64,000 nt of DNA from sequence record PP695294.1; one strand, written 5' to 3'. Position 1 is the first letter of the stretch. Each line of letters opens with the position of its first letter. Of the stretch, positions 2,570 through 6,874 are shown one piece after another. The notes below the pieces were generated by a model, which did no database searches, was not told the DNA's origin, and saw only the letters and a program-made list of their open reading frames with translations. The position numbers were made by a program, and so were the translations under genes.

Positions 2570-2818
2570 ATGCAAAAAACAATCATCGGAATAACGGTTG
2601 GTTCTTTCTGTGGCTTCCCTACCCCACAAACAGAACCCCAATATTTGGGCGCAGGCAAACCTGATCCGGAAGTCCGTAAGTTGCGCGAAGAAGCAAAAGC
2701 CAGAGTTCTTACTGAGCTGGAATCGTTGCTTCAGTCTCCGGTTATTTCACAATGGGGTATGGCAATAGATGTCACTAGAACTGATCGACGAGGCTATTAT
2801 CTCCCACGACCTGTTTAA
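2570..2818 (+). CDS. Hypothetical protein, 82 aa
   Basis: ATG directly after the previous stop; overlaps the macrodomain gene by 50 nt. Confidence 0.5.
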   Translation: MQKTIIGITVGSFCGFPTPQTEPQYLGAGKPDPEVRKLREEAKARVLTELESLLQSPVISQWGMAIDVTRTDRRGYYLPRPV

Positions 2819-3269
2819 CGCGCCTGAGCGCTTCAAGGTCGTTACAGTTAACTGTGTTGGTGCAATGGGAAGGGGCATTGCTTTGGCGTGCCGAGAACGC
2901 TTCCCATCGCTTTATAATGACTATCGCCAGAAATGTCGTAAAGAGCAAATCGTTATCGGTGAGGTCTATTGTTATCCTGAGGAAGGGGTAATACTCCTTC
3001 CTACTAAAACCCATTTTCGCTATAAATCGCAGATTTACTATGTCACGTCCGGCATTGATGCGCTGGCGCGACTAGGGGAAGACTTAGAAGGAGGGATTGC
3101 GATACCGCCCCTAGGGATGGCTAACGGTTGGTTACGTTACCATGAGCGATTGGAAATCTTTATACACTTACAGAAACGACTACAACACACGGAGCAGACT
3201 TATCGATTCTATTTACCGGACACACTGCTAAAGGAAGCAGAGAAAATCATCCCAAATAGTTTCAAATAG
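2769..3269 (+). CDS. DarG-like macrodomain (ADP-ribose glycohydrolase)
   Basis: DLF..., VTVNCVGAMGRGIALACRERFP, LLPTKTHFR, IAIPPLGMANGWL match DarG-type macrodomain motifs. Confidence 0.85.
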   Translation: MSLELIDEAIISHDLFNAPERFKVVTVNCVGAMGRGIALACRERFPSLYNDYRQKCRKEQIVIGEVYCYPEEGVILLPTKTHFRYKSQIYYVTSGIDALARLGEDLEGGIAIPPLGMANGWLRYHERLEIFIHLQKRLQHTEQTYRFYLPDTLLKEAEKIIPNSFK

Positions 3270-3368: not shown

Positions 3369-4091
3369 ATGTTTCGCACCATTTTATTTCTTCTGGTAGC
3401 AATGACTACGTTCAACAGCAACGCTTCTTACCAGACCACCAGTAACAAACACCAAAAAGAATTCGTCCTTATCCAGGACCAGTTCAATGAGATTAAACCT
3501 CTCATCGTCACCGCATCTCGAAAACAAGGCGTACATGCCGGGATGCTTGCGACCACCATTTACCGTGAATCCCGTTTTAATAAAAACGTGGGTAAGAATA
3601 AATCGAGCAGTGCTAGTAGTGTTGTCCAAATGACGACAGGCACTAAACGCTCCATGATACGTCTGTATGGGAAACAACTTAACATCCCAAAGAACGCAGA
3701 CCTTAATAAACCGAAGTATGCTGTACAGCTTGCTGCCGTTTACATGAAACACATCGAGGATCATCTGACAAAACAACTCAAACGCAAGCCGAGCACAGCC
3801 GAAATCGCTTTAGGCTACCGCTTCGGTGAGGGTGCTGCTGTTGCGATGATTAAAAAGAAATCACCGGTCGGGAAACGCTGGATGGCCAGCTACCGAAAAG
3901 ACGCAGCATTCTACGGTGCGAAAATGACACCACCGAAAGCTGAAACACGTCAGCTTGCTTTTGCGAAGGAAGACCACGACCAACGCGTCGCCGAACTTCA
4001 GAAAATCTGGGATACGCTGTACACCAAAATATCACCTGCGGCCGGTACATTACTGGCAAATAACACTATCATGAAAGGAGCATTGCTTTGA
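3369..4091 (+). CDS. SLT-type lytic transglycosylase with N-terminal signal peptide
   Basis: MFRTILFLLVAMTTFNSNA signal-like start; IYRESRF (catalytic Glu), ASSVVQM in place of AxGLMQ, DLNKPKYAVQLAAVYM, LGYRFGEG. Confidence 0.8.
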   Translation: MFRTILFLLVAMTTFNSNASYQTTSNKHQKEFVLIQDQFNEIKPLIVTASRKQGVHAGMLATTIYRESRFNKNVGKNKSSSASSVVQMTTGTKRSMIRLYGKQLNIPKNADLNKPKYAVQLAAVYMKHIEDHLTKQLKRKPSTAEIALGYRFGEGAAVAMIKKKSPVGKRWMASYRKDAAFYGAKMTPPKAETRQLAFAKEDHDQRVAELQKIWDTLYTKISPAAGTLLANNTIMKGALL

Positions 4092-4681
4092 CACTCGTAA
4101 CACGCCCCTGGTATCCAGGTCTTAAAACAGCCGCACAAATCACCGCCAAAGACGTTTACGAACTGATTCGCGCGGGTGCGGAACACGTTCAAACCAATCC
4201 GAACTACGTTGAGCGTCCTATCGGTGAAGTCGATGGGGAAGCTGTCGAAGCACCTGTCTACGTTGAGTACGGCGAATGGTTCGCAGAGAACCACGGTTTC
4301 TACGACGCGTTAAACGCGGCGTTTGGTGATGACGAAGACGAAGGTATCGAATTCGACTGGAACGTTAATCTGGCGCTGATGTGGATTTGTGGTTTACGTC
4401 CAGCGATTAACGAAACCGAAGCAGGCTTCGTGCTGACGTGGCGACAGTCGGCGGGTTACGATAAAGAACTCGACTTCAAACAGGCGTATATGGATGTGTC
4501 GATTGCACTGCAGAAACTGTTCTTCGGCGATCGTGCTTTCTGCCAGCTCAGCTGGTTGACCATCCTGGAAAAACTGGCAACGTGCCACAAACTGTGGCGA
4601 GCAGAAGATGCCCCAGAACATCTTTTCGTGCTCGAATATGCAGTGGTACCGAACCAGCCGTTCTTTGAGGCCGAAGCGTAA
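4088..4681 (+). CDS. Acidic hypothetical protein, 197 aa
   Basis: TTG start overlapping the SLT stop, AGGAG upstream; terminator follows. Confidence 0.75.
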   Translation: MTLVTRPWYPGLKTAAQITAKDVYELIRAGAEHVQTNPNYVERPIGEVDGEAVEAPVYVEYGEWFAENHGFYDALNAAFGDDEDEGIEFDWNVNLALMWICGLRPAINETEAGFVLTWRQSAGYDKELDFKQAYMDVSIALQKLFFGDRAFCQLSWLTILEKLATCHKLWRAEDAPEHLFVLEYAVVPNQPFFEAEA

Positions 4682-4686
4682 TTAAC

Positions 4687-4720
4687 GGTCAGACCTTCGG
4701 GTCTGACCACCTTTTATTTA
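4687..4720 (+). terminator. Intrinsic terminator
   Basis: GGTCAGACC-TTCG-GGTCTGACC followed by T-rich tail. Confidence 0.8.
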
Positions 4721-4732
4721 ATTCTTGGGTGT

Positions 4733-4999
4733 GTGTTCGTGAAACGTTTAATAAATTTTCTCTACTGGATGGAGAAACGCTATAGCCACAACATTCCGAT
4801 GATGTATAGTTTGTTATTCTCCACGGTAATGTTGGTGATCGGTGCGATCGTCGCGCATCTGATGGAACTCACGTCTCCATGGGCGCAACTCTTTCTTACC
4901 ATCTGGATGTTGTTCTCAGGCTACCACATACGTGGTTTCATAACCCGATTCTTTCGCTGGCGTAGTACCTGGCACGTCTTTAATTCCGACCGTAACTAG
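4733..4999 (+). CDS. Small membrane protein with 2 TM segments, 88 aa
   Basis: MMYSLLFSTVMLVIGAIVAHL and WAQLFLTIWMLFSGY hydrophobic stretches; basic C-terminus. Confidence 0.65.
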   Translation: MFVKRLINFLYWMEKRYSHNIPMMYSLLFSTVMLVIGAIVAHLMELTSPWAQLFLTIWMLFSGYHIRGFITRFFRWRSTWHVFNSDRN

Positions 5000-6250: not shown

Positions 6251-6874
6251 TTAATTTGTTAACCCATTATCTTTCAGGATTTTCAACATCGCATCATTCA
6301 ACGCCTGCAGTTCTTGATTCTGCTTAGTGAGTGCTGCAACTTGTTCTGTCAGAGGAACCTGCTCACGGATTTTGGCTTTACGCACAGCTTCCATTTGCAG
6401 ATGTTCTTCTTCCGTCACCGTCCCTTCGTAATCCATCGATGTGATGTCCACACGTGCATCGATTCCTAAACCGCGTTCTAAAATGCTTTTCAGGTCGTTC
6501 GTTAGCAGTGTGACGTCGACGTATTCGGGTATTAATGCCAGGTCAATAACCACCACATTGCGTCTATAATTTAACCCGTTCAGTCCGGGATACGTCTCAA
6601 TGTACGTATCAGGCAACTCGTAGACTTGACCGTCCCTCGACTTTAATGTTACAATCGAAGCTTCGACATTAGCGTCGCTGATATAGTCGTCACGAGTTAG
6701 GCCGACGGGTTTATAATACTTGTTATAAACGTCAATATTATTACGTTGGAGCTTCGGAAAGTTCTGTACCGCGTCAACACGGTAAATCACTTTATCTGGC
6801 AACGTATAAGGTGCCTTAACCTTGAACAACCCCTCAAGGTTAACCTGAGGCGTATTAGGCAACAGTTGTGCCAT
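6251..6874 (-). CDS. Probable virion structural protein, 207 aa
   Basis: AGGAGG RBS; co-transcribed with the 459-aa gene; C-terminal coiled coil; call rests on position in phiKZ-like genomes. Confidence 0.55.
   Translation of the reverse strand: MAQLLPNTPQVNLEGLFKVKAPYTLPDKVIYRVDAVQNFPKLQRNNIDVYNKYYKPVGLTRDDYISDANVEASIVTLKSRDGQVYELPDTYIETYPGLNGLNYRRNVVVIDLALIPEYVDVTLLTNDLKSILERGLGIDARVDITSMDYEGTVTEEEHLQMEAVRKAKIREQVPLTEQVAALTKQNQELQALNDAMLKILKDNGLTN

Follow-up and report, generated by a model that had tools for sequence, protein, structure and literature searches.

The window analysed here is a 64,000-nucleotide stretch of sequence record PP695294.1, and the gene under study (the macro gene, encoding the macro protein; Table 1) appears in the ORF list of the window as an ATG-initiated reading frame coding for 166 residues. 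As an in-frame TAG lies immediately 5' of the ATG, no upstream extension of the reading frame is possible, and the first nine residues of the protein are the same in the orthologue from Erwinia phage Asesino, which supports the assigned start. An 82-aa ORF (SPN3US_0195) at 2570-2818 (+) shares 50 nt with the 5' end of the macro gene; the place that it would hold in Asesino is an unannotated 246-nt gap, which leaves it doubtful whether this ORF is coding. The gene order of the locus is common to Asesino, with an SMC-like gene, an acetyltransferase and small ORFs preceding the macro gene, followed by a transglycosylase and then by a virion protein on the opposite strand. The acetyltransferase neighbour (818-1333, +) is of the GNAT type (Pfam Acetyltransf_1, 21.1 bits versus a cutoff of 20.7) and occupies the same position in Asesino, as does a DUF7194 protein at 6251-6874 (-; E 2e-71). 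A strong, terminator-like hairpin at 4687-4708 (+) has nine pairs, six of them G-C, and a T-rich tail behind it. It is placed just 3' of an ORF ending at 4681 and may be where a run of co-directional genes that includes the macro gene and the SLT transglycosylase (3369-4091) ends. Beyond it, an 88-aa hydrophobic ORF at 4733-4999 (+) has a sub-threshold match to Pfam DUF4231 (E 3.6e-4, 21.4 bits versus a cutoff of 24.7). A scan for sigma-70 promoters revealed no enrichment of such sites (6 found versus 5.5 expected); the phage has its own RNA polymerases.

Table 1. Position of the macro gene and of its predicted active-site elements in the window, with residue conservation in the 62-sequence alignment.
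Feature	Position	Strand	Remarks
Putative adfM orthologue, stand-alone DarG-type macrodomain	2769..3269	+	ATG start, 166 aa plus stop; SPN3US_0196 (gp196), orthologue of Asesino gp217
Asn28 codon	2850..2852	+	aligned with T. aquaticus DarG N22 and PhiKZ AdfM N23; invariant
Glycine-rich loop 1, G31-A38, GAMGRGIA	2859..2882	+	M33, G34, G36 and A38 invariant; G31 at least 90% conserved
Lys80 codon, PTK motif	3006..3008	+	aligned with catalytic K80 of T. aquaticus DarG and K78 of PhiKZ AdfM; T79 and K80 invariant
Glycine-rich loop 2, P113-L122, PPLGMANGWL, putative second phosphate-binding loop	3105..3134	+	G116 and G120 invariant; P113, L115 and L122 at least 90% conserved

Salmonella phage 1252 (PP695294.1) shares 100% identity with the first 12 kb of the window, and SPN3US, of the genus Seoulvirus, shares 98.2%. 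SPN3US is included in a 2026 review among the phages with a demonstrated nucleus-like compartment (PMC13282480), and split multisubunit RNA polymerase beta-subunit genes are annotated in the region of its genome equivalent to the window. Closeness to SPN3US suggests that the phage encoding the macro gene is likewise a nucleus-forming jumbo phage (chimallivirus). In SPN3US the orthologue bears the number SPN3US_0196, or gp196 (L001:5768-6268), and has the RefSeq tag ACQ60_gp070 and the product name 'macro domain-containing protein'. This tag runs opposite to the original numbering and is easily mixed up with the 'essential gp70' of Thomas et al. 2016. Identity of the macro gene with that essential, non-virion SPN3US gp70 (PMC5105663) was rejected, as the original number of the macro gene is gp196; the gp70 of that study is 29% identical to its PhiEaH2 match versus 69% for the macro protein, which identifies them as different genes.

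The macro gene is present at full length and at least 97% identity in 23 records and is under purifying selection, with Nei-Gojobori dN/dS ratios of 0.11 versus SPN3US, 0.04 versus MET_P1_082_240 and about 0.08 versus Asesino, the last with saturated dS. Shortened versions in SPFM phages raised the suspicion of gene decay, which we rejected as an artefact of the deposited records. At the DNA level, 11 SPFM Salmonella phage ENA records match the macro gene in six to eight pieces, and in SPFM1 (L012, LR535901.1) the match between the window and a 3.5-kb neighbourhood is split into 50 non-collinear pieces of the same strand, with a median length of 60 nt and a rank correlation of -1.00. This pattern comes from the records and not from biology, and it looks like a file-handling artefact in the SPFM deposits. 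These records yield spurious database 'proteins' of 111-152 aa (P0037, P0038, P0042, P0043, P0047, P0050 and P0052). Three close homologues (P0001, P0013 and P0016) come from contigs of up to 243 kb and bear the name 'hypothetical protein [Salmonella enterica ...]'; bacterial isolate assemblies therefore contain whole SPN3US-like phage genomes under a bacterial label.

By sequence, profile and predicted fold, the nearest relatives of the macro protein are the macrodomains of DarG antitoxins, with TARG1 next and generic macrodomains far behind. The protein matched the NCBIfam antitoxin_DarG equivalog NF048014 with an E value of 7e-31, the match being limited to profile positions 7-154 of 338 and scoring 107.7 bits versus a whole-protein cutoff of 250. 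No other NCBIfam model matched at E<=10, including the YmdB-type ADP-ribose-binding models, and DarG was also its sole match in PADLOC (3e-32). Among solved structures, the only significant sequence matches were DarG macrodomains, namely those of M. tuberculosis (5m3i, 2e-20) and T. aquaticus (5m31/5m3e, 8e-19) and that of a Thermosipho DarTG fusion (7omu). A profile of 60 relatives gave E values of 1e-70 to 3e-52 for DarG, 7e-18 for TARG1/OARD1 (C6orf130; 4j5q/4j5r/4j5s), 6e-9 for Poa1p and at least 1e-7 for other macrodomains. The Pfam Macro model (PF01661) gave a borderline match to residues 25-118 at 21.7 bits (E 2e-4), and the position of this score just below the gathering cutoff of 22 probably reflects how the model was constructed, not doubt about the fold. 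An AlphaFold2 model of the macro protein, built on an alignment of window and search-derived proteins, had a mean pLDDT of 94.6 and a pTM of 0.90, and the predicted fold is unambiguously that of a macrodomain. When this model was compared with the PDB using Foldseek, ranks 1-4 were all DarG macrodomains, 5m3e among them (TM about 0.75-0.83, 24-32% identity), while TARG1, the second-closest class by profile and by fold, took rank 5 (TM about 0.68-0.79, 16% identity). Searches yielded 4,241 relatives. The NCBIfam DarG model was matched by all 62 of the aligned relatives, and the closest full-length cellular ones, P0090 (342 aa) and P0091 (349 aa), are each encoded directly 3' of a PF14487 DarT gene; because such relatives both match the DarG model and adjoin DarT genes, they are genuine DarGs. 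These results bear out an earlier note on this DNA, which had read the product as a DarG-like macrodomain and had named clustering with generic Appr-1-p or O-acetyl-ADPr macrodomains as the finding that would speak against this; we found DarG to be the better match by many orders of magnitude.

DarG2-like macrodomains of chimalliviruses have been described under the name AdfM ('anti-DarT factor macro') and occur in about half of these phages (Morgan et al., Cell Rep 2026, PMC13309987). The members named are PhiKZ gp104, PhiPA3 gp108, Goslar gp83 and Asesino gp217, of which PhiKZ gp104 strips ADP-ribose from a DarT2-modified oligonucleotide (thymidine-ADP-ribose), rescues E. coli from DarT2 toxicity and is required for resistance to DarTG2 (PMC13309987). 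The AdfMs of PhiKZ, PhiPA3 and Asesino localise to the phage nucleus (PMC13309987). Like these proteins, the macro protein is a stand-alone DarG2-like macrodomain of about 160-166 aa from a presumed nucleus-forming jumbo phage, with the same Asn and Lys and no DarT partner; unlike the named AdfMs, it and its phage are absent from the main text of PMC13309987. BLASTP aligned it with Asesino gp217 (YP_009290835.1) without gaps over 166 of 166 residues at 70% identity (E 4e-90), and with KTN4_132, a protein of the species Phikzvirus phiKZ that matches the gp104 construct printed in PMC13309987, at 35% identity (E 8e-25). Within the Seoulvirus/Erskinevirus clade it is localisation alone that has been shown, for Asesino AdfM, whereas activity has been shown for PhiKZ AdfM, which is about 35% identical.

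The motifs that the earlier note had quoted from the ORF were all found there (three of three), with VNCVGAMGRGIA at residues 27-38, PTKTHFR at 78-84 and IAIPPLGMANGWL at 110-122. Ten columns are invariant in a 62-sequence alignment that takes in Asesino gp217 and the PhiKZ-type protein, namely N28, M33, G34, G36, A38, Y52, T79, K80, G116 and G120. Several of these fall in the glycine-rich segment G31-A38, which we take to be the first phosphate-binding loop typical of macrodomains. The macro protein belongs to the same macrodomain subtype as DarG2 (T. aquaticus 5m31/5m3e, M. tuberculosis 5m3i, NF048014), with about 31-43% identity and with the asparagine, the lysine and both loops conserved. 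The lysine of the DarG FPTK motif, whose retention the same note had pointed out, is K80, which is aligned with the catalytic lysine of both the Taq DarG and PhiKZ AdfM. The asparagine and lysine of PhiKZ AdfM, N23 and K78, are marked as active-site residues in the AdfM paper, in which an N23A mutant had lowered activity (PMC13309987).

In a quick neighbour-joining tree built on the macrodomain core, effectively unrooted and with weak support, the macro protein grouped with Asesino AdfM in a clade whose members are all stand-alone proteins of 160-174 aa. PhiKZ gp104 fell outside this clade, a small clade common to the two being present in 4% of bootstraps. The SPN3US/Asesino-type and PhiKZ-type proteins share about 35% identity, each being about as near to bacterial DarGs as to the other. 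Such distances leave some room for the two types being separate captures of a bacterial DarG macrodomain instead of one vertically inherited chimallivirus gene, a history that we consider rather unlikely; if it were true, the Seoulvirus/Erskinevirus clade could have a specificity of its own, for example for Enterobacterales DarT2 variants or for a wider range of ADP-ribosylated nucleic acids.

The same distances bear on whether the macro protein may be a broader eraser of ADP-ribose from nucleic acids or proteins, directed against other or further defences (for example those yielding ADP-ribosylated RNA or phage proteins), with DarT2 reversal as one activity. We regard this as improbable. TARG1/OARD1 enzymes act on several ADP-ribosylated substrates, and they are the next-best relatives after DarG. 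ADP-ribosyltransferase defences acting on mRNA exist (PMC11618068), and a Seoulvirus clade as distant from PhiKZ AdfM as from bacterial DarGs has room for a shifted specificity. However, in the profile comparison DarG is ahead of TARG1 by more than 30 orders of magnitude (1e-70 versus 7e-18), TARG1 is a eukaryotic enzyme with about 16% identity to the macro protein, and the bacterial DarG2 macrodomains have been described as acting exclusively on DNA ADP-ribosylation (PMC13309987). Nothing in the present results points to another substrate. Still less probable is a housekeeping role in Appr-1''-p processing or on O-acetyl-ADP-ribose, in which the enzyme would clear NAD-derived metabolites during infection. 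The labels of public records ('phosphatase', 'Appr-1-p processing protein'), the assignment to PHROGs family 335, 'phosphatase' (5e-30), and a weak similarity of residues 21-59 to the ADP-ribose 1''-phosphate phosphatase Poa1p (E 0.05) are in keeping with such a role. These labels are, however, generic inherited macrodomain names, the Poa1p match is confined to loop 1 and lies about 20 orders of magnitude below that to DarG, and the matching of DarG alone among the NCBIfam models and the presence of the DarG/TARG1-class catalytic lysine both argue against a metabolic enzyme.

Although its macrodomain is of the DarG type, the macro protein differs from the DarG of DarTG2 in being the product of a lytic-phage gene that ends at residue 166, with no C-terminal DarT-binding domain and no adjacent darT. 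The DarT-binding domain has no counterpart in the 166 residues, which leave uncovered the profile region (positions 175-313) that matches the DarG C-terminal chain 7yk3_B. A search of the ten flanking ORFs with Pfam DarT/DUF4433 (PF14487) gave no match, and when two natural DarT proteins, taken from the DarTG operons of the closest full-length relatives, were compared with the whole window, the best tblastn E value was 0.85 and phmmer found nothing. A DarG-type HMM matched one window ORF only, the macro ORF itself. Extending the search to 50,697 phage records revealed DarT in two of them, one from Thermus phage phiMa and one a faecal contig, neither of them a jumbo phage, with no DarT in any jumbo phage or in any Seoulvirus record; the macrodomain was found in 253 of the same records, many of them from jumbo phages that infect Pseudomonas, Erwinia, Serratia, Salmonella and Escherichia. 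The earlier description of the gene as an orphan with no adjacent DarT is thus correct, and it extends to the whole window and to the Seoulvirus records. As the C-terminal domain and an adjacent darT were both tested for and are both lacking, the macro protein falls outside the strict definition of a DarG antitoxin; judged from its sequence, it probably acts as the macrodomain of DarG does and is a member of the phage AdfM group. Least probable of all is that it partners a phage-encoded ADP-ribosyltransferase and undoes or restrains modifications that the phage itself makes on host or phage targets, since, although some phages pair a transferase with a macrodomain (for example the DarT-DarG of Thermus phage phiMa) and one macrodomain match falls under a feature annotated as ADP-ribosyltransferase in Streptomyces phage Satis, a DarT-like gene is missing from the window and from every Seoulvirus record, an ADP-ribosyltransferase domain is absent from all ten neighbours, and the RefSeq annotation of SPN3US from 168.7 to 235.9 kb lists no ADP-ribosyltransferase. 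In Thermus phage phiMa (MH673674.1, L011:2471-4227), the complete DarT-like gene phiMa_38, whose product shares 36% identity with a bona fide DarT (E 8e-33), is directly followed by phiMa_39, a 357-aa full-length DarG-like gene, making this a phage-borne DarTG pair whose annotations read only 'hypothetical' and 'ADP-ribose 1-phosphate phosphatase related'.

We propose that the macro gene is very probably the Seoulvirus orthologue of AdfM, a counter-defence enzyme that would reverse DarT2 thymidine ADP-ribosylation on phage DNA, probably in the phage nucleus and without sequestering the toxin. On infection of a DarTG2 host, DarT2 would use NAD+ to ADP-ribosylate thymidines in single-stranded DNA, and these marks would block phage DNA replication and packaging. 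The phage would then supply a free-standing copy of the antitoxin's catalytic macrodomain, which would hold the ADP-ribose moiety via its two glycine-rich loops and hydrolyse the thymidine-ADP-ribose bond with Asn28 and Lys80, restoring unmodified DNA. As the protein has no C-terminal DarT-binding domain, we would expect a pure eraser that does not sequester the toxin, and as SPN3US-type phages build a nucleus, it would probably be imported there to work where the phage DNA is. Since nuclear import is largely cognate-specific (PMC13309987), import in the phage studied here is something that we infer.

What was computed here in support of this proposal is the homology, orthology and synteny of the macro gene, the catalytic residues and fold of its product, the absence of DarT and the purifying selection; we infer for the macro protein the same activity, localisation and role as for the PhiKZ and Asesino AdfMs. 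With only about 35% identity to the PhiKZ enzyme and no grouping with it in the quick tree, it is conservation of the active site and of the fold that underlies the transfer of substrate specificity. The published AdfM mechanism, the 70% identical syntenic orthologue Asesino gp217, the homologue PhiKZ gp104 and the retention of N28 and K80 support the suggestion made at the outset of a phage-encoded orphan eraser of thymidine-ADP-ribose. A survey of plasmids with a single DarT query, in which the records were mostly from Bacillus and few were enterobacterial, is too indirect to bear on how common DarTG2 is in the Salmonella hosts.

A comparable strategy is found in other phages. The T4 protein Tk.4, also named AdfM, is a phage macrodomain reported to be needed against DarTG2 (HIDEN-SEQ, Nat Microbiol 2026, PMC13716836). 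The macro protein would follow the same proposed eraser logic, while Tk.4 is only a distant structural relative (a Tk.4-family protein has Foldseek rank 39, 16% identity and TMq 0.58) from another macrodomain lineage and from a phage without a nucleus. The phage NADARs (AdfN, anti-DarTG1), AdfA and AdfB share the strategy of neutralising DarT with phage factors, and AdfN is likewise an 'orphan antitoxin-like enzyme' (PMC11825919). Unlike the macro protein, however, these factors have unrelated folds or mechanisms, NADAR reversing the guanine-ADPr made by DarT1 and AdfB binding DarT directly (PMC11481870).

The macro gene is of an already known kind, two 2026 papers having described orphan DarG-like macrodomains as anti-DarTG2 erasers, one in chimalliviruses (PMC13309987) and the other in T4 (PMC13716836). 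Its recognition adds no new biology; it confirms that a real counter-defence gene can be picked out by reading the sequence alone. It also makes relabelling possible, in that public entries now named 'hypothetical protein', 'phosphatase', 'Appr-1-p processing protein' or 'protein-ADP-ribosylation protein' could be renamed as AdfM orthologues. As loss of AdfM is reported to have narrowed the host range of PhiKZ on clinical isolates (PMC13309987), the presence of adfM would be a useful descriptive marker when SPN3US-like phages are set against the defence repertoires of their hosts.
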